The notes beneath the pieces were generated by a model, which ran no database searches, had not been told where the DNA came from, and saw only the letters and a program-made list of their open reading frames with translations. Of a DNA stretch of 42,771 nucleotides, positions 4,615-42,771 are shown piece by piece. The first letter of the stretch is position 1; each line of letters starts with the position of its first letter. The position numbers were made by a program, and so were the translations under genes. Source of the DNA: Octopus bimaculoides. Lineage: Eukaryota. The stretch covers positions 1,711,702 to 1,754,472 of the forward strand of contig NC_069002.1 in NCBI RefSeq assembly GCF_001194135.2. Reading direction: 5' to 3'.

Positions 4615-4803
4615 GGCGCAGGAATGGCTGTAGGTGCAGCAGTGGCTGTGTGGTAAGAAGCTTGCTTCCCAACCACATTGTTCTGGGTTCAGTCCCACCG
4701 CGTGGCACCTTGGGTAAATGCTTTTACTATAGCCTCTGGCCAACCGAAGCCTTGTGAGTGGATTTGGTAGACGGAAACTGAAAGAAGCCTGTCGTATATA
4801 TAT
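4615..4803 (+). mobile_element. SINE family A, 5' half (tRNA-like head), with a duplicated 5' start
   Basis: It reads GGCTGTGTGGTAAGAAG...GGGTTCAGTCCCAC (B-box-like)...GGAAACTGAAAGAAGCC followed by (TA)n, and matches 31422-31824. Confidence 0.9.
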
Positions 4804-7879: not shown

Positions 7880-8290
7880 GTTTGGCCTACAAGTAATAGC
7901 AATGAAATCTCACTCAAATCACACTGAACTGTGTTTAAAAATTGATACATTAAACTGTATTTAAAAATTGATACATTAAACAATATAGTCTTAGATAGCC
8001 ATCAGCGACCTAGATATCTGGAATTAATATGAAAGAAATAATGGGATGTTGATGGATAAAGATTTGTTGTTACAAATAAATTTTGGCAACAATTAAAAAT
8101 ACTAAGCGACCTATATGGTTACTGGTTTTGCTAGAAATAGCTGAAACCTATCTAAAGAAAAGTCAGGCAAACATTGGTTAAAATGTAGTATCTGATACCA
8201 AAAAGAAAATATACAAAAGGGTGGTCACTATTGGAAATGGTTTGATCTCAGTTTTGTAGCAGCAGTGATATCCTGGGTCTAAACCTCATT
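7880..8290. repeat. Old dispersed repeat fragments, including a 2 x 26-bp tandem duplication at 7927-7978
   Basis: The 26-bp duplication aactgt(g/a)tttaaaaattgatacatta is read directly. 8215-8285 loosely matches the reverse complement of 13197-13260. Confidence 0.45.
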
Positions 8291-8751: not shown

Positions 8752-9352
8752 NNNNNNNNNNNNNNNNNNNNNNNNNNNNNNNNNNNNNNNNNNNNNNNNN
8801 NNNNNNNNNNNNNNNNNNNNNNNNNNNNNNNNNNNNNNNNNNNNNNNNNNNNNNNNNNNNNNNNNNNNNNNNNNNNNNNNNNNNNNNNNNNNNNNNNNNN
8901 NNNNNNNNNNNNNNNNNNNNNNNNNNNNNNNNNNNNNNNNNNNNNNNNNNNNNNNNNNNNNNNNNNNNNNNNNNNNNNNNNNNNNNNNNNNNNNNNNNNN
9001 NNNNNNNNNNNNNNNNNNNNNNNNNNNNNNNNNNNNNNNNNNNNNNNNNNNNNNNNNNNNNNNNNNNNNNNNNNNNNNNNNNNNNNNNNNNNNNNNNNNN
9101 NNNNNNNNNNNNNNNNNNNNNNNNNNNNNNNNNNNNNNNNNNNNNNNNNNNNNNNNNNNNNNNNNNNNNNNNNNNNNNNNNNNNNNNNNNNNNNNNNNNN
9201 NNNNNNNNNNNNNNNNNNNNNNNNNNNNNNNNNNNNNNNNNNNNNNTATATATATATATATATATATATAGCATTATATTAATTTATTGTTATACCTTCT
9301 TGTATGTTTACATACATACATACATACATGCATACATACATACATACATACA

Positions 9353-9657: not shown

Positions 9658-10044
9658 TTACTGCTTTTCTATGGGATCTATTAATTAACTATATGTAAAT
9701 CATAATTATATTATATTCATAGATAATTACAAATCTACCTTACACCCTTGTTGCCTCAGCCCTACGGGTACGCAGACCCTAATCCCTCTAAACTCTAAGT
9801 CGAATCTCGGACCCTCCCCTCCAACCCCCCTCCACACTCTCAAGGAAACTAACAGATGAACCTCCTAACCCTCATAAAGTAACAAATAAATAATAGACAT
9901 AGACACACAAACATACGCACAAACATATATATGTATGTGTATGTGTATATATACACACATAGATACAAATATATATACATATATATATTTAAATACATGG
10001 CATATGTGCAGATATGAATGTGTGTGTGTGTGTACTTGTGAAAG

Positions 10045-23668: not shown

Positions 23669-25188
23669 GCTACCGCATAGTTAAACTTAAGATCTTTCCA
23701 CACACACACACACAAACACATTAACACACACACACTACCCCTCCNNNNNNNNNNNNNNNNNNNNNNNNNNNNNNNNNNNNNNNNNNNNNNNNNNNNNNNN
23801 NNNNNNNNNNNNNNNNNNNNNNNNNNNNNNNNNNNNNNNNNNNNNNNNNNNNNNNNNNNNNNNNNNNNNNNNNNNNNNNNNNNNNNNNNNNNNNNNNNNN
23901 NNNNNNNNNNNNNNNNNNNNNNNNNNNNNNNNNNNNNNNNNNNNNNNNNNNNNNNNNNNNNNNNNNNNNNNNNNNNNNNNNNNNNNNNNNNNNNNNNNNN
24001 NNNNNNNNNNNNNNNNNNNNNNNNNNNNNNNNNNNNNNNNNNNNNNNNNNNNNNNNNNNNNNNNNNNNNNNNNNNNNNNNNNNNNNNNNNNNNNNNNNNN
24101 NNNNNNNNNNNNNNNNNNNNNNNNNNNNNNNNNNNNNNNNNNNNNNNNNNNNNNNNNNNNNNNNNNNNNNNNNNNNNNNNNNNNNNNNNNNNNNNNNNNN
24201 NNNNNNNNNNNNNNNNNNNNNNNNNNNNNNNNNNNNNNNNNNNNNNNNNNNNNNNNNNNNNNNNNNNNNNNNNNNNNNNNNNNNNNNNNNNNNNNNNNNN
24301 NNNNNNNNNNNNNNNNNNNNNNNNNNNNNNNNNNNNNNNNNNNNNNNNNNNNNNNNNNNNNNNNNNNNNNNNNNNNNNNNNNNNNNNNNNNNNNNNNNNN
24401 NNNNNNNNNNNNNNNNNNNNNNNNNNNNNNNNNNNNNNNNNNNNNNNNNNNNNNNNNNNNNNNNNNNNNNNNNNNNNNNNNNNNNNNNNNNNNNNNNNNN
24501 NNATGTATATATATATATGTATGTATGTATATATATGTATATACGTCCAGACACAAATATACACATGGGCACATACACACACACATCTTACACACACACA
24601 CACACACACATTACACACACACATTACACACACACACACACACACACACACCTTACATACAAAACAGAGAAGTCAGACAGAAGGTGCCAACGATTTATGC
24701 AGAAAACAGTTTGAAAACGATTGAAGCAAATAAAAAGTGATTGTTTATTATTTTTTTTGTCTTTTTTTATTTCCCTTTGATTTCAATGTTTTATTCTTCC
24801 TTTTCTTTTTGTACTGTTGTTTGTTTTATACGTATTTTTCGTTTATATTTTTATTTTATAAACAAATTCTTACCTTTAACTATTCCTGGTGTTAAGAATT
24901 TCTCTTTACATAGTGTTTGTTGCCAGTGTTGTTGCTGTTCTTGTTGTCATTGCTGGTATTCCTGTTGTATTTGCTTTTACTGCTATTGTTGTTGTTGTTG
25001 CTGCAGCAGCAGCAGCAGTAGTAGTACTAGTAATAGTAGTAGCAGCAGTAGTAATGGTAGTAGTATTAGTATTAGCAGCAGCAGCAGTAGTAGTAGTTGT
25101 AGTTGTAGTTGTAGTAGTAATTATTGTTGTTGCTGCTGCTGTTGTTTAGGCGGTTGTTGGTGCTGTTATTTATGTTGAAGTCTGCGTT

Positions 25189-25969: not shown

Positions 25970-28172
25970 GTCTTCTCCTTTTAGTTCTTATTTATTCATT
26001 TTATTTATCTATTTATTTATTTGAGCAACGAGTGCCGTCGGTGAAGTTTGAAACCGTAATTGTAAAGTATGTTGAGTGTTTGTTTAGAGTTTTGTGAGGT
26101 GGACAGAACCGTTTGACGATTCGTTGGCAAAGGTTTGCATCTGAACAAGTCTAAAATCATTCTTAACCTGTTTTGTCTGACGCGTCAAACATTAAACCCA
26201 AACACTTTCATTCTACCCAACAACACCCACCACCACCACCACCACCACCGCCTTCACTATTTCTTCTTTGTCTTTTTCGTCTTCATCGTCTCTCAAATTC
26301 TTCCTCCTCCTTTTCCTCGATAATCACAAGAATTACGTCTCTAACAGCGAATGTTTTCACTTATAAGTGTCTTCTTTTTGTTTGTTTTTTTTTGTTTTTT
26401 TTTTACTTCAATATTTGTTTCTTCTAAATTGTGTTGAAACAAACTGAAATAAAATGAAATAACAAAAACAATAAAAANNNNNNNNNNNNNNNNNNNNNNN
26501 NNNNNNNNNNNNNNNNNNNNNNNNNNNNNNNNNNNNNNNNNNNNNNNNNNNNNNNNNNNNNNNNNNNNNNNNNNNNNNNNNNNNNNNNNNNNNNNNNNNN
26601 NNNNNNNNNNNNNNNNNNNNNNNNNNNNNNNNNNNNNNNNNNNNNNNNNNNNNNNNNNNNNNNNNNNNNNNNNNNNNNNNNNNNNNNNNNNNNNNNNNNN
26701 NNNNNNNNNNNNNNNNNNNNNNNNNNNNNNNNNNNNNNNNNNNNNNNNNNNNNNNNNNNNNNNNNNNNNNNNNNNNNNNNNNNNNNNNNNNNNNNNNNNN
26801 NNNNNNNNNNNNNNNNNNNNNNNNNNNNNNNNNNNNNNNNNNNNNNNNNNNNNNNNNNNNNNNNNNNNNNNNNNNNNNNNNNNNNNNNNNNNNNNNNNNN
26901 NNNNNNNNNNNNNNNNNNNNNNNNNNNNNNNNNNNNNNNNNNNCGATTCCGATGGAAGTCTTTGGAGTTTTTCTTTATTCATTGTGTCTTTGTAATTAAA
27001 GGACGCATAATTTTCGCCCCAACTTTCCGTCACAGACTATGACGGAGGCAAAAACCCTTGACCGTTTCCTAGAAAGAGTAGGAGGAGGAGAAAGAAGAGG
27101 AAGAGAAAGAAAAGGAGGAGGAAAAAACAAGAAAAATAAGAAATATACGCGAGAACAAAAGAATGAAGTAGAGACGGAAGAAGACGAAGAAGAAGAAGAA
27201 GAAGAAGAAGAAGAAGAAGAAGAAGAAGAAGAAGAAGAAGAAGAAAGAAGGAAAGAAAAGAAAAACGGAGAACAAGAAGGGTACGACAGAGTAGAAAGGG
27301 ATGAAGAAGTGAAAACGGATGAAAAAAATATTAAGAAGAAAAAGTAAAAAAATTGAAGACAAGAGGCGAGCAAAAGAGGAAAGATTGCAAGACATAACTG
27401 GACAAAGTTGTAAGAGATTATTGGCAAATACGGGATTTGCTTTTTTATTTATTATACAAATACCGCCAGTGTGTGTGTGTGTGTGTGTGTGTGTGCGTAT
27501 CTATAAGTATCTATATATATGTATGTGTATATTTATAAATACATACAGATATGTGTGTATATGTATATAAGTGTCGCTAGGTTATATATATATATATAAT
27601 GTACATATATGCATATGTATATACATACGTATTATGCATTTATATATGCATACGTATGTGTGAGTGTATACGTGTATACACAAATATATGCATACACACA
27701 TACACATATATGTATATATATGAAAGAATGTGTGTCATTGCATGCAAACGTATTTAAACACGTTTTCATACGTGGTTTATGTGTACGTGTGTGTGTATTC
27801 GTGCGTGTTCTTGAGTGCAAGTGTATTTGTGTTCGTGTATAGGTGTGTATGTGTGTATGCGTGTGTATGTGCGTGGCGGTGTGGAGAGGGGTGTAGAAGA
27901 ATCTAAACTTATAATCCCTTTTGTCGCGGCCGGAGACAATCCATATCAGAATACTTGTTAGATTTGTTTCTTCAGTCGGTTGTTGTGTGTTCTTGTGATT
28001 ATTAAATAAAGACCGTGCAAAGCCAATAGCAACGAGGAACAACGCACACACACACACATGTATATATACATATCTAAACTCTCATATACATTACACATAT
28101 ACACATATATACATGCAGCCTTGATTGCCGTCTAAGAGCTCAAGAAATACCAATACAACTTCCGGTGAAATA

Positions 28173-28299: not shown

Positions 28300-28550
28300 N
28301 NNNNNNNNNNNNNNNNNNNCTATCTCTCTCTCTCCCTTTCTTCCTGTATGTGTGTATCTGTGTATTTGATTGTTGTATATGTATACAGAGCATAAGTTTT
28401 GATTAGCAAATCTACATCCTAATGTAGATGTTAATGCTTTCATCTAAGAATTAATAGCATTAAATGTACATACTAACACATTTCTCTCTCTCTCCCACTT
28501 CCTTCCTTCCTTCCTTTCTTCCTCGTTCTCTTTATCTCTCTCTGTACTTA

Positions 28551-28582
<32 letters not shown>

Positions 28583-28622
28583 TCTATAGAGGCTGTGTGG
28601 TTAAGAAATTCGTTTTGCAACC

Positions 28623-28890
28623 TGATCAACGGAACAGCTTGCTCGTGAAATTAACGTGCAAGAAGTTGAGGGCTCCACAAACACGTGTACCCTTAACGTA
28701 GTTCTCAAGGAGATTCAGCGTGACACAGACTGTGACAAGGTTGGCTCTTTTTAAATTACAGGTACTACTCATTTTTGCCAGCTGAGTGGACTGGAGCAAC
28801 GTGAAATAAAGTGTCTTGCTCAAGGACATAACGCGTCGCCGGGAATTGAACTCATGACCTTACGATCATGAGGCGAATGCCCTAACCACC
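28623..28890 (-). mobile_element. SINE family C, well preserved, nested between A-type head (28590-28622) and tail (28934-29007) fragments
   Basis: The minus strand reads GTGGTTAGGGCATTCGCC...GAGTTCAATTCCCGG...GTCCTTGAGCAAGACAC and matches 37862-38094. Confidence 0.9.
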
Positions 28891-29116
28891 TGAAACATGC
28901 AAAAGATAAAATATAAGATATATAGTGAATTGAATTTGTTCGACGAACGTCTTGAGTTGATGCTCCAGCTAGCCGCAGTCCATTGACTGAAACAAATAAA
29001 AGAGTAATGGTGTAAATACAAACGCTTGTATGAAAGTGTAACCATTTAATACGATATTCTCGTCTCAATGCAATTATGTTCGTTGCCCCTGATTGCGAAT
29101 ATTTTCTATTTAAAAG

Positions 29117-29198
29117 GTCGGATACTGGTTGATGTACCCTGCAAAGTGTGCCAAGACCATTCCTCGGGTAAACACTATGGAATATACGCTTGTGACGG
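29117..29198 (+). CDS. tll: Tailless/TLX (NR2E1/NR2E2-type) nuclear receptor, internal coding exon: first zinc finger up to the P-box ([28 protein letters not shown])
   Basis: Manual translation from 29119 gives [26 protein letters not shown]+GG, closely matching Drosophila tll ([27 protein letters not shown]) and vertebrate TLX as I recall them. The acceptor is ttttctatttaaaAG at 29115-16 with a branch-like CTGAT at 29089-93, and the donor is GTAAGT at 29199. The exon is 82 nt, phase 1 in and phase 2 out; reading through the donor hits TAA at once. Confidence 0.93.
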
Positions 29199-30241
29199 GT
29201 AAGTTGCTGTCTCAGAAACTACCTTGTTTTATATCTTTGTTCAAATATATACGCAGACACTGAACTTGAGTCAAATCTCAGTCTGACAAAAACAGTAGAA
29301 AATTCTTTCAAATCACCCATCTTTATTATTAAAAAAAAGAAATTAGGAGAAATATTCCTGATAATTTGAGTGAATAGATTTAATTTAAATCATTTTATGT
29401 AAATTAATTATGTATCACAATAATGTAATTATACATTTAATGATGTTTATACTAATGAAACTTCTGTTGAGTTGAATTGAATTATAGGCTATAAGTAACA
29501 TTTTATGTTTTTCTGCTTATATTCTAAATATGTTACCCTTAAAGATGGTTTTAACGGATTCTGTGTAAACTTGGATTGACTGCAACGTAATAATGTGTTG
29601 GTGTTTAATGAACTGTTATTAATTGAGCTCTTAATTATCGTTATATATGTATGTATGTGTATTCCTGTCCCACCTATCCTACCTCTCTTCACCCCTATCC
29701 CACCTTTATCCTACCGTTATTTTCTCCTTTTCACTCAACCTCTTTCTTCCAGTCATTTCATCATGCTGAACCGTTAATCCCTAATCATTTTTTTCTCTCC
29801 GTTTTTTTTCTTTTTTTTTTTACCTCACAATCCTTTTTGTCGAAGATCATAAACTCGAAACGTCAAAGATTTTTTCCATTCTTCCCAAGCGTTAAACTAA
29901 TACATTTACTTGTTGTTCTTTCACTTGTCTTCGTCTTTTCCTTTCTGTAAATTTGAGCTATTCATATATATCCCAAGCACACACACACACACACACACAC
30001 ACGCAAATGAAAAGTGATATGATTGTTTTTTTTTTCATTTGTCTAGCTCGTAAACATCTAGCGTCTTACTAAGTTGAGATCACAGATTTAGTGGTAAGAC
30101 GGTTTGACGTCTATTTTTAGCATACAAGGGATCCACTTAGTGGTATCTCATATTGTTTCATACTAATTATAGTTATTGCGTTTCTTGGTACTAATATCAT
30201 GCATGCACACATACACGTATACACACTTATGTGTGTAAGTG

Positions 30242-30274
<33 letters not shown>

Positions 30275-30792
30275 NNNNNNNNNNNNNNNNNNNNNNNNNN
30301 NNNNNNNNNNNNNNNNNNNNNNNNNNNNNNNNNNNNNNNNNNNNNNNNNNNNNNNNNNNNNNNNNNNNNNNNNNNNNNNNNNNNNNNNNNNNNNNNNNNN
30401 NNNNNNNNNNNNNNNNNNNNNNNNNNNNNNNNNNNNNNNNNNNNNNNNNNNNNNNNNNNNNNNNNNNNNNNNNNNNNNNNNNNNNNNNNNNNNNNNNNNN
30501 NNNNNNNNNNNNNNNNNNNNNNNNNNNNNNNNNNNNNNNNNNNNTTATTATCATCATGATAATCAGCGTTGTAAATTACGTAGAAAATCCTCGCTTTGGT
30601 GATTCTGATAACAATGATGATGATGATGATTGTATTGGTAGTGTTTGGTGGTGACGGTGAGGAAGACGGCGTTGATTATAATATTGCAGGTGATGGACAG
30701 TGCCTTTCTCTTTAGTAATTGTACATCGACATAAACCTTTCACTCATCCTCTTTTTATGAATGTATGTATGTATGTATGTATGTATGTATGC

Positions 30793-30838
<46 letters not shown>

Positions 30839-30914
30839 TTGAGATGGAGAGAGTGAGAGAGAATCGATACATAGATTGTACAGGAGGTGCAAGGTGTGCC
30901 AACGGAAGAGGTCA

Positions 30915-30998
30915 AAGCGATTGCAGGGCAACGTGAAATGAAATATTTTGCTCAAGAACACTGTGCGATCCGAGAATCGAACTCATAATGTGACGATT
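30915..30998 (-). mobile_element. SINE family C head fragment
   Basis: gcaacgtgaaatgaaatattttgctcaagaacac...gaatcgaactcat is the reverse complement of 10090-10160. Confidence 0.7.
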
Positions 30999-31111
30999 AT
31001 GCATGCATACATACATACATACATACATACATACATACAACTTTATATGTGTTTCTATGTTTAGCTCTGTTCAGTTGAATAACTCCATATCTTCGTCCAT
31101 TTCTCAACCAG

Positions 31112-31247
31112 CGCTCCATACGTAGAAACAGACAATACATATGTAAATCCCGTGGCCAAGGTAATTGCCCAGTGGATAAAACACACAGGAACCAATGTCG
31201 AGCATGTCGACTGAAGAAATGTCTCGAAGCTGGAATGAATAAAGATG
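31112..31247 (+). CDS. tll: Tailless/TLX nuclear receptor, coding exon with second zinc finger ([45 protein letters not shown])
   Basis: The translation carries the NR2E signature [17 protein letters not shown]...MNKD; RQY and KSxxQG favour tll over dsf or PNR. The acceptor is tcttcgtccatttctcaacCAG and the donor is G|GTAAGT at 31248. The exon is 136 nt, phase 0 in and phase 1 out. Confidence 0.95.
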
Positions 31248-31421
31248 GTAAGTCTTTCCCCTCGATTTATTTACCAGCTTTAAAAATTTATTTATTTATT
31301 TGATCAATTGCTTGTCGCCTCGTTTTTTACCTGTCTCTCTTCTGGTTTGACAAAAGCATGCACGTTATAAAAAAATAAAAAAAAAACATGATTCTTAATT
31401 CCAGAACTGTTTAATCAGTGA

Positions 31422-31820
31422 GGTGCAGGTGTGAGTGTGTGGTAAGAAGCTTGCTTCCCACCCACATAGTTCCGGGTTCAGTCCCACTGCGTGGCAACTT
31501 GGACAAGTGTCTTCTATAGTCTCAGGTCGACCAAAGCCTTGAGAGTGGATTTGGTAGACGGACACTGAAAAAAGCCCATCGTATGTATATATATATGTGT
31601 GTGTGTGTGTTTCTGCTTGTCCCCTCCCCACAACGCTTGAGAACCGGCATTGGTTCTCGTATCAAGCGGTTCGGCAAAAACAGACAGAATAGGTACCAGG
31701 CTTCAAAAAAAACAAAAAAACATCGAGGGTCGATTCATTCGACTAAATGTTCTTCGAGCTGGTGCCCCAGCATAGCCGCAGTCAAATGACTGAAACAAGT
31801 AAAAGAGTAAAAGAATCAAA

Positions 31821-31824
<4 letters not shown>
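31422..31824 (+). mobile_element. Full-length SINE family A with internal (TA)n(TG)n
   Basis: Head, middle, microsatellite, body and tail (ggtgccccagcatagccgcagtcaaatgactgaaacaagtaaaagagtaaaagaat) are all present. Confidence 0.93.
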
Positions 31825-31888
<64 letters not shown>

Positions 31889-33349
31889 GCAACTAAACGC
31901 AAATCGATTGAACACTTTGAATCTTTTAAGCAGAAATCAGTGTCGGCGTTCCACTGAGTAATGTTTTATCAAATGTCAGGGACGACAGTTTGATTGAATA
32001 AATGGAAATTGCAACTTTAATTATCGTCTTTGACCGTGAAATAAGGGATGTGGAGAGGAGGAGGTCACACTAAACACGTAGCATGAGCAACGATACTCTC
32101 CTAACACAAAGAACATCCGTGCCGTTCACCACCGAAAACGCCATTGTATTCTAACCGTTGTTGTGCCAATACTCGCAATTTGCCAGCATCTCACGAAATC
32201 CATATCCAAACGATCAAGAATGTTCTTTCCGTTGTTGTTTTTGTAGTTGTTGTTGTTGTTTTATTGCATGTTATTTTATATACTTTATTTTATTATTTTT
32301 AGTGCTTTTTGTATATATTTCCCTTGTTTTATTACTTCCTTGTTCACCTACCTTTCCCGTTTCTTTTCCCTCGTTGATTTTTTTTCCTGGCTTTTTTCCC
32401 CCCTTTTCATTTTCTTATATGATTCTTGCACGTATTTCTTCTTCTTCTTCTTCTTCTTCTTCTTCTTCTTCTTCTTCTTCTTCTTCTTCTTCTTCTTCTT
32501 CTTCTTCTCTTTCTTTCTTTCTTCCGTCTTTTATTATCTGCTTTGTTTGTTTACTAATCTAGAGACATATTTTAGAGTATTTGGTGGTAACCAGCCAAAT
32601 CAATTTAGTCTAACAACAGGGGAAGAAACCTATTGATTGCGACACGAAGTTTTCCGGAGCTCTTTTAACGCTGGAGATGCGAAAAATACAACATCTATTG
32701 TTACCACTTCTCAGTCCACCCCACACCCACACCACAGCTAGATTTATTATTGAATAGTAACCATAAACAGAGAATAAATGCTAAATATTTCTTTTCTTCA
32801 CGTTAAAATACCTTGAGATTTTTTTTTCTGGTTTTCTTGTTGCAATTTGTTGTTTCTTTAATTATTAATGTATTTAGATATTTATTTATTTGTTGAATTT
32901 AAACATAACATTCTGATTTCGTTTACTTATGCGGTCATGTTTGTGCCATACAGGCGTAGGCATAACCATGTTGTTGAGAATTTTGTCTTAGAGTCACGTT
33001 ATTCTAGGTTCGATCACAATTGTGTTCGAACTTGAGGGTAAAAGAAAAAGAAGAAGGGCTTATCATAGCATCAGATTGTTCGAAACCTCGACAAGGATAT
33101 TTTGGAGACGGGAAACTATGCGCAAGCTCATCGTCCGGACTGCTATAACAGGCTGTTCTTAAGTCATCGACCGGTAACCCCCATTATAACCATCACCAAC
33201 AGCGTCACCACCACCACTACCACCTCCAACGCCAACACCGCTGGCTCTCTACTGATCAAGGGAGTTCTATTTACTTCAGCACCTCCTCTCCACAAGAAAC
33301 AAGGGCCAACTAGAGGGGCTAAATAACAGTAACATCACCCTTGTATATA

Positions 33350-33665
33350 CGTTTGTGTGTTTGTGTTTGTCCCCATCCACCCACCCTCGGTTGACAACCG
33401 GTGCTGGTGTGTTTACGTCTCCGTAATTTAGCAATTAGGCAAAATAGACTGATAGACTAACTACTAGGCTTACAAAAAATAAGTCCTGGGGGCGATTTGT
33501 TCGAGTAAAGGTGGTGCTCCAGTATGGCCACGGTCAAATGGCTGAAACCTTTAAACAAATAAATAAATATATACTGTGGTCGATTTATTCGACCAAACCC
33601 TTCAAGACGGTAATTACCCCAGCATGGCCGCAGCCTAGTAACTGAAATAAATAAAAGAATACAAG
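33350..33665 (+). mobile_element. SINE family A, 3' half plus a second tandem tail (33576-33665)
   Basis: The body matches 25790-25969, and the module cgattt.ttcga...ccagcatggccgcag...actgaaa occurs twice. Confidence 0.85.
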
Positions 33666-34388
33666 AATAGAAAAATAAATGTAATAAAATACAACAAAAT
33701 AAACAAATAAGGGGTTGCCATAGCTGGAACCCCTTTGATCGGACCTGGTCGGCAGAGGTGGTGGTGGTGGTGCGGGCGGAGGGGGTAAGAGAGGGGGTTA
33801 ANNNNNNNNNNNNNNNNNNNNNNNNNNNNNNNNNNNNNNNNNNNNNNNNNNNNNNNNNNNNNNNNNNNNNNNNNNNNNNNNNNNNNNNNNNNNNNNNNNN
33901 NNNNNNNNNNNNNNNNNNNNNNNNNNNNNNNNNNNNNNNNNNNNNNNNNNNNNNNNNNNNNNNNNNNNNNNNNNNNNNNNNNNNNNNNNNNNNNNNNNNN
34001 NNNNNNNNNNNNNNNNNNNNNNNNNNNNNNNNNNNNNNNNNNNNNNNNNNNNNNNNNNNNNNNNNNNNNNNNNNNNNNNNNNNNNNNNNNNNNNNNNNNN
34101 NNNNNNNNNNNNNNNNNNNNNNNNNNNNNNNNNNNNNNNNNNNNNNNNNNNNNNNNNNNNNNNNNNNNNNNNNNNNNNNNNNNNNNNNNNNNNNNNNNNN
34201 NNNNNNNNNNNNNNNNNNNNNNNNNNNNNNNNNNNNNNNNNNNNNNNNNNNNNNNNNNNNNNNNNNNNNNNNNNNNNNNNNNNNNNNNNNNNNNNNNGGT
34301 GGTAGTGGTGGTGGTGGTGGTGGCAGCAGCGGTGTCTGAGGCTGCGAAAGCTCTTGGATGTATGCGCGTAAGATTATTGTGCATTCCA

Positions 34389-36565: not shown

Positions 36566-36820
36566 GGTGTGCGCATGGTATTGTAGTTAAGAAGATCGCT
36601 TTTAGACCATGTGGTTTCGGGTTCGGTTCCGCTGCGGGGTGGGGCTGAGACTTTGGGTAAGTGTTTTCTACCATACCCTCGGGCCGATCAATGCCTTGTA
36701 AGTGATTTTGGTAGACGAAATCTGTGAGGAAGACCGTCATACAGTGTGTGTGTGTGTGTGTGTGCGTGCCCACCTCACCGCTTGACAACCAGTGTTGGTT
36801 TGTTAACGTCCCCATAACTT
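36566..36820 (+). mobile_element. SINE family A, diverged and 3'-truncated
   Basis: The head gttaagaag...gggttcggttccgctgcg is followed by tttggtagacg, (TG)n and cttgacaaccagtgttggtttg. Confidence 0.82.
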
Positions 36821-39613: not shown

Positions 39614-39917
39614 CACGCACACAACGAAAGACCATCATTTCCAACAACAACAGTAATAATTCGCTTCCAGCAAAGTAAATAACAACAACAACAACAATGA
39701 TACTAATAATAATGATAACGCTAATAATGCTTTTTTTTTATTCCCCCCCCCCAAGGGCCACAGACGACGTGGTGGGGAGGGAGACGTTATAACAAGTCCA
39801 AATTACAAAATGGGAGGCGTTTCCCATTTTACACAGAATGTGATATGGAAAGAAAAACCCTAAACAAACAAGCAAATGAGAAATAAAGGAAAAGTAGTAG
39901 CAGTAGTAGTAGTAGTA

Positions 39918-41430: not shown

Positions 41431-41646
41431 GTATATATATGAATGTATGCGTATATACAGACACGCGCGCGCAAGCACACGCACAACATACACTCACATC
41501 TCTTGGGTGTAGGAGAAATTAGAAAAAGTTAAGAAAAGAAAAAAATATATAAAAAGATGAATATTGACACAGATTTACGCTGAGGAGGGGCCGGACTGCA
41601 CACACACACACACACACGTGCATGTATGTGTGTTTGAATGAATGTG

Positions 41647-42116: not shown

Positions 42117-42771
42117 ATTAATATACTATCATAAGATGCCGTGTGTTTGTTTGTATTGGAATATAATAGGGAAGTGAAGAGAGAAAAGTAAATGAAGCAA
42201 GGGGGAGGACGGGATCATGAGTTGGAGAGTAAAGGGAAGAGGTGGGAGAAAGTATCAGAAAGCTGGAGAAACAAGACAGATAGAGAGAGAGAGAGTGTGA
42301 GAGAGAGGCGGGGGAAGAAGTGTGAGGAGTATCTTGTTAGCCTGTTTTTGGTGGTTCAAAACCATCTAACAGTCCTATTGTGATGGATCCGGTACAGTGC
42401 ATTGTGGGATGTTAAAAGCACAGGGCTGTATCACTAATAACAGCAACAACGAAAATGACGACGACACCACCGCCATCGTCATAATCATCGTCGTAATCAC
42501 CATCACCATCACCATCATCATCATCATTATCATCCACGTCGTCGTTATCGTCCTCATCATCGACATCCTCACCGTCATCCTCACTATAACCCATCATCAT
42601 CATCATCATCATCATCACGACCACCAATACCATCACTCACCCCTCCTCCCATCATTATCATCATTATCATCATCATCATCACCCTCCTCCTCTTCCTGCT
42701 CCTCCTCCTCTTCCTGCTCCTCCTCCTCATCATCATCAACTTTTCAATATTCGACTGCTTTCTCTCATACA

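Follow-up and report, generated by a model that had tools for sequence, protein, structure and literature searches.

The tailless (tll/NR2E1) gene of Octopus bimaculoides seems to lack 19 nt in the middle of its first zinc finger, and this apparent loss is very probably the work of an assembly gap that hides an ancient, constitutive micro-exon. The DNA analyzed here (the window, 42,771 nt at its full length) would be part of an octopod tailless/NR2E1 orthologue. In protostome tll, two old introns are proposed to split the first zinc finger and the P-box region. Intron A would interrupt the Gly codon of C-D-G (phase 2), and intron B would separate FFK from RSIRR (phase 0). The 19-nt constitutive micro-exon between these introns would encode C-A-G-F-F-K, which includes the last of the four zinc-binding Cys residues of finger 1 and begins the recognition helix. 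It would sit in unread DNA between two contigs (the gap at 30275–30544), and the gene would only appear 19 nt short. The spliced product of exon A, the micro-exon, and exon B (82 + 19 + 136 = 237 nt) would read ...TGTGACGG-N-TGYGCNGGNTTYTTYAAR-CGCTCCATACG....

Two sequenced exons on the + strand flank the missing piece. Exon A (29117–29198, 82 nt) has its acceptor ag at 29115–29116, preceded by tttaaaag, and ends with TGT GAC GG before a gtaagt donor in phase 2. It encodes the first three Cys of zinc finger 1, and the break falls within the Gly codon after Cys-Asp. Exon B (31112–31247, 136 nt), preceded by ccatttctcaaccag, starts after a cag acceptor in phase 0 with CGC TCC ATA CGT AGA (RSIRR) and ends with AAA GAT G before another gtaagt donor. 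Its 45 residues and final G comprise the remainder of the recognition helix and zinc finger 2. Reading and translation therefore confirm the junction described in an earlier note on this DNA, in which exon A stops at CD-GG in phase 2 and exon B starts at RSIRR in phase 0. When the two exons are joined through six X residues, the product matches the Pfam zf-C4 profile (PF00105) with 84.6 bits against a cut-off of 21.1, and the match is collinear and gap-free over profile positions 2–70. Since this match accommodates exactly six X residues, the hole consists of six residues and the third base of the Gly codon, namely the 19 nt that had been claimed to be absent. Of the P-box C-D-G-C-(A/S)-G-F-F-K, C-D-G (in part) is the only segment sequenced in the window.

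The two exons do not form a coding sequence on their own. When exon A is joined straight to exon B, the frame shifts and translation stops at a TGA at 31212–31214 on the + strand, which is the outcome predicted earlier for skipping of the micro-exon. Two acceptors nearer to exon A had been dismissed, and both indeed fail. One ends at 31074 and keeps the frame but runs immediately into TGA, and the other, which ends at 31064, does not keep the frame.

The missing residues are not encoded in the sequenced DNA. The absence of a TGY-GCN/TCN-GGN-TTY-TTY-AAR string from the sequenced intron, reported in the earlier note, holds in both protein-motif and DNA-pattern searches. A six-frame search for C.GFF[KR] gave no match on the gene's strand in the whole 42.8-kb window, and the looser motifs.GFF. 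and C.[GAS][FCY][FY][KR] gave none on the + strand of 29199–31111. Matches to the loose motifs elsewhere (GFFK at 1203–1214 and C.GFF on the minus strand at 39852) are unrelated. The DNA pattern AGNTGYGCNGGNTTYTTYAARGT was not matched on either strand of the whole window, even when three mismatches were allowed. The searches were extended to the minus strand and to the whole window in order to catch a misplaced contig. That the micro-exon lies in the sequenced intron, too diverged or too finely split to be recognized, is a purely formal possibility whose probability is close to nil. The loose protein motifs and the DNA pattern with three mismatches were both empty on the + strand between the exons, and the CAGFFK peptide is invariant across all protostome orthologues examined.

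The sequenced 5′ part of the A–B interval (intron A, 29199–30274, + strand) is free of the micro-exon, and its contig terminates there in a (TA)n microsatellite. It is followed by a scaffolding gap of 270 N at 30275–30544, whose length is an estimate. The left edge of the gap is a perfect (TA)13.5 microsatellite, a typical end point of a short-read contig, and no reading frame crosses the gap. The sequenced 3′ part (intron B, 30545–31111, + strand) contains the two decoy acceptors ending at 31064 and 31074. It is rich in microsatellites, including (ATG)n, (TATG)n, (ATA)14, and (CATA)n, and carries a weakly repeated segment at 30928–31001. Exons A and B are located on separate contigs (28320–30274 and 30545–33801) that are joined by scaffolding alone. 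The window contains 21 N runs with a total of 8012 bases (18.7%), so the loss of a 19-nt feature in a gap is unremarkable and the prior chance that a short feature is hidden is high. Because no sequenced part of the window contains the micro-exon, we place it by elimination and by orthology in the unread stretch 30275–30544. It would thus be present in O. bimaculoides, within this gap, and would be included in every productive mRNA. An exact look-up in other assemblies of the ORFs at 29068–29202 (exon A) and 29651–29950 (intronic) returned no match.

An exon of the predicted kind is found in relatives. Contigs of protein-search matches to the DNA-binding domain (DBD) were fetched together with named genomes. 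The probes were 79, 369, and 184 aa long; the latter two were synthetic chimeras, used only as bait, of the window DBD with oyster contig L001 or with the Argonauta hinge and ligand-binding domain (LBD). A 19-nt exon N-TGY-GCN-GGN-TTY-TTY-AAR lies between the same two exons in seven of the seven orthologous loci tabulated. In the octopod Argonauta hians (L006), exon A ends at 32531, the micro-exon occupies 33420–33438, and exon B starts at 33652, which leaves 888 nt for intron A and 213 nt for intron B. The sea slug Elysia chlorotica (L005, RQTK01000815.1) has the micro-exon at 42673–42691 between an exon A that ends at 41564 and an exon B that starts at 49061 (introns of 1108 and 6369 nt). 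In a bivalve contig nearest to Mercenaria (L003, ENA ERZ25069866), the corresponding positions are 7735, 8090–8108, and 10202, with introns of 354 and 2093 nt. Two further spiralian contigs show the same arrangement: L002 (Logan ERR14368248; exon A end 7806, micro-exon 8188–8206, exon B start 10115; introns of 381 and 1908 nt) and L004 (ENA ERZ25072999; 9561, 9796–9814, and 10034; introns of 234 and 219 nt). The nemertean Lineus longissimus (L008) has exon A ending at 11597, the micro-exon at 13506–13524, and exon B starting at 13972 (introns of 1908 and 447 nt). In the horseshoe crab Tachypleus tridentatus (L010), exon A ends at 9127, the micro-exon lies at 13783–13801, and exon B starts at 14053 (introns of 4655 and 251 nt). 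Several of the matched ORFs begin exactly at ...Q/RSIRR and represent exon B alone. The oyster contig L001 was uninformative as evidence, as it contains only 871 nt upstream of exon B and includes neither exon A nor the micro-exon.

The exon boundaries of the window agree with those of these seven loci in position and phase. A long pyrimidine tract and ag stand in front of all seven micro-exons, whose donors are gtaagt, gtgagt, gtaaga, gtaagc, gtgagg, and gtatgt. The micro-exons of Elysia, the Mercenaria-like bivalve, Lineus, and Tachypleus share the length, phase, peptide x-CAGFFK, and canonical splice sites of the Argonauta exon, which reads ctctttttcag/CTGTGCAGGATTTTTCAAG/gtaagt between exons A and B. 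In the Argonauta, Lineus, and Tachypleus loci, a single string on the + strand encodes CAGFFK, and this string is the micro-exon. The annotated proteins of these three species (P0134, P0139, and P0153, respectively) contain CDGCAGFFKRSIRR. When the Argonauta micro-exon is put between exons A and B of the window, an uninterrupted DBD results (...YACDGCAGFFKRSIRR...). The prediction of a frame-restoring 19-nt exon, composed of the last base of the Gly codon and CAGFFK, is therefore borne out at the predicted boundaries in seven loci, including one from an octopod.

The relatives say less about where in the A–B interval the exon lies. The sequenced minimum in the window is at least 1076 nt for intron A and at least 567 nt for intron B. 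These minima are compatible with the introns of relatives, which range from 234 to 4655 nt for intron A and from 213 to 6369 nt for intron B and are too variable in length to predict the position of the micro-exon. Sensitive blastn between the Argonauta and window introns gave only low-complexity matches. Since the introns cannot be aligned, the expected position of the micro-exon cannot be mapped onto the gap. One point weighs against placement in the gap: the 567 sequenced bases before exon B, about 130 nt of which are microsatellite, exceed the 213-nt intron B of Argonauta, and lineage-specific insertions would be needed here. The earlier suggestion of the gap at 30275–30544 thus stands in so far as the exon exists at the predicted boundaries in relatives and is absent from the sequenced bases, while its location follows by elimination only.

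The sequenced exons belong to a gene that is under purifying selection. The best matches to the DBD are NR2E1-like proteins of Haliotis and other molluscs with 90% identity, and the full-length sequence of an Argonauta protein with a nearly identical DBD falls with mollusc NR2E1 in similarity searches. The closest full-length relatives appear to be NR2E1/Tll, not PNR, DSF, or FAX-1. The Argonauta protein in question (P0134; GCA_054771915.1, BAAFZT010000065.1) is deposited as ‘photoreceptor-specific nuclear receptor-like’. Exon A is 87% identical to that of Argonauta at the nucleotide level, with 11 synonymous and no non-synonymous codon changes. Exon B is 83% identical, with 18 synonymous codon changes and one conservative change (I to L). 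These identities, combined with introns that cannot be aligned, assign the window to an octopod genus other than Argonauta. The 29 synonymous changes against one conservative replacement over the 72 codons of both exons indicate purifying selection, and hence a functional gene that needs the 19 nt.

This codon pattern cannot be reconciled with a pseudogene or a shifted-frame protein. A true lack of the 19 nt, which would leave a pseudogene or a divergent protein with an incomplete first zinc finger, would fit the failure to find the coding string anywhere in the sequenced DNA of the window. It would also fit the protein searches, which returned no octopus Tailless protein, Argonauta being the only cephalopod found. 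We nevertheless regard it as highly improbable. Both exons are intact and show the above excess of synonymous changes, their splice sites are intact, no alternative acceptor opens the frame, and the closest relative found, Argonauta, has the micro-exon. A micro-exon hidden by the gap is the preferred reading. The window and the Argonauta locus share an upstream exon, the boundaries and phases of exons A and B, and a DBD that differs by one residue. They differ in that the Argonauta micro-exon is sequenced and annotated, whereas the corresponding DNA in the window is unread.

The gap also separates the two exons physically, and exons A and B could come from different loci or paralogues, with an A–B interval that is an artifact of scaffolding. 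The two exons do lie on different contigs linked only across an N run, and Tll-like paralogues exist in spiralians, such as the second proteins of Mizuhopecten and Pinctada (P0151 and P0233). Such mis-scaffolding has hardly any probability in our assessment. One and the same orthologue, Argonauta P0134, is the closest match to both exons, and the window is collinear with a single Argonauta locus. An upstream exon, a non-coding core, exon A, exon B, and two downstream blocks occur in both in the same order and orientation, which supports the scaffold join of the two contigs.

The upstream coding exon of the same gene (23079–23165, + strand, 87 nt; cag/AC CGG CTG ... AGA ATA G/gtaagt) encodes (N)RLVLTKCPPAVDSVTEYEHNCNSLHSRI-G, an N-terminal extension found in octopod sequences only. 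It matches Argonauta L006 at 24810–24940 by blastn, and its translation matches residues 10–40 of P0134. Other mollusc Tll proteins run from MNKxxGTSS directly into RIL..., and octopods seem to carry an inserted N-terminal exon. The conserved non-coding core at about 27900–28035 (about 31310–31440 in L006) lies approximately 1.1 kb upstream of exon A. It contains TAATCCC-TTTGTCGCGGC-GGAGACAAT ... GTGTGTTCTT-TGATTATTAAATAAAG, lies within TA/TG repeats of low complexity, and may be a regulatory element of the intron. The downstream blocks at 31992–32203 and 32554–32686 lie in the next intron and are 70–75% identical to L006 34751–34965 and 36490–36628. An interspersed repeat about 100 nt long has copies at 4684–4796, 31472–31583, and 36650–36724, and it matches at least eight places in the 72-kb Argonauta locus with 76–93% identity. 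No exon for the ligand-binding domain (PF00104) is present in the 11.5 kb downstream of exon B. This absence from the window is expected because the next exon in Argonauta is about 27 kb downstream, with the LBD exons more than 27 kb away.

The two flanking introns have been retained to different degrees in various lineages. The micro-exon is common to a chelicerate, a nemertean, and three classes of molluscs, and the simplest reading is that introns A and B were both present in the protostome ancestor. A mollusc- or cephalopod-specific origin of the micro-exon was considered and is ruled out by Lineus and Tachypleus. In the annelid Owenia fusiformis (L007, 8322 onward), only intron A is present, and the exon starts with ag/A TGT GCT GGA TTC TTC AAG CGT TCC. 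Many further ORFs start with CAGFFKRSIRR, as expected with intron A only. The ORFs P0024, P0274, and P0345 read CDGCAGFFK-V...-QRSIRR and thus have intron B only. In the hemichordate Glandiceps and in crustacean-like ORFs, the whole region lies in one exon with neither intron. All four combinations of introns A and B survive, in different lineages. The protein of L004, which keeps both introns, is nearest to Owenia among the named proteins compared, and the intron state may vary within or near annelids, as Owenia has no intron B and L004 has both. One Logan contig contains a Tll-paralogue-like ORF (P0103) that reads ...SRNAGFFKV, followed by a short in-frame intron and KRSIRR.... An N stands there before AGFFK in place of the expected zinc-binding C, which could reflect a shifted acceptor or an artifact of the ORF frame. 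Judged by these sequence comparisons, the micro-exon is best described as an old protostome gene structure with no cephalopod or neural speciality.

Alternative micro-exons of the nervous system are 3–27 nt long, depend on Srrm3/4, are mostly multiples of 3 nt, are alternatively included, and alter surface loops. The tll exon resembles them in that it is very short and in that its gene acts in the nervous system and the eye. It differs from them in that it has a length of 3n + 1, contributes a Cys that coordinates zinc as well as part of the recognition helix, and is by all signs constitutive. The earlier note had raised the idea that the micro-exon is also skipped under regulation, with the resulting mRNA, which carries a premature termination codon, lost to nonsense-mediated decay (NMD) as an on/off switch for DNA binding by Tailless. 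The exon is not a multiple of 3 nt and is essential for finger 1. Skipping gives the TGA at 31212–31214 upstream of further exon junctions, given that the Argonauta LBD exons lie more than 27 kb downstream. However, a premature stop upon skipping is true of any constitutive exon of such a length and is uninformative. No protein with a clean A–B join was found among the 257 retrieved sequences with an RS(I/V)R motif, and the proteins devoid of CAGFFK are mis-annotations caused by read-through or decoy acceptors. The seven orthologous micro-exons look constitutive, with long pyrimidine tracts and consensus donors. UGC upstream of ag marks Srrm-dependent neural micro-exons, and a reading by eye of the seven orthologues found no consistent UGC motif just upstream of ag. 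With strong splice sites and no skipped isoform in the retrieved proteins, the switch is unsupported, and we consider it very unlikely. We judge it similarly improbable that regulated skipping occurs in some cell types of cephalopods or other protostomes, where it would either gate Tailless through NMD or give a finger-less product. Constitutive inclusion of the micro-exon is the preferred reading.

Public gene models treat the micro-exon unevenly. Deposited proteins of Argonauta, Lineus, Tachypleus, and many RefSeq molluscs include CAGFFK. Models of Elysia, Plakobranchus, Taenia, Paragonimus, and Schistosoma bovis do not have it at the A–B junction. The Elysia model EGW08_017632 (P0002) reads CDG-LQQTFPSLILSQ-RSIRR through a false upstream acceptor, although the genome has the micro-exon at 42673–42691. 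The Plakobranchus model P0157 is devoid of finger 1. In Taenia solium P0018, Paragonimus westermani P0026, and Schistosoma bovis P0061, CDG is connected to RSIRR through a few spurious residues. The expectation that automated annotation would miss the micro-exon therefore holds for at least five spiralian models, and it does not hold for the several public models that include the exon. A search of the library of papers available to it found none linking micro-exons with tailless or NR2E1. The micro-exon is nonetheless already captured in public gene models and is not new biology. Isoform X1 of Haliotis rufescens (P0001, RefSeq, 89 aa) ends with ...MNKDGK by reading into the intron that follows exon B, and its product consists of the DBD only. 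What varies between isoforms here is this next intron and not the micro-exon.

For the octopus, the practical meaning is that the Tailless protein of any gene model based on the present assembly will be frameshifted, truncated, or finger-less, and that the cause is the gap and not the biology. More widely, a dropped micro-exon can distort inventories and phylogenies of nuclear receptors; in PMC4388693, for example, BgTLX was reported as ‘incomplete’ and left aside. A minor evolutionary point is that chelicerates, nemerteans, and molluscs have the micro-exon in common.
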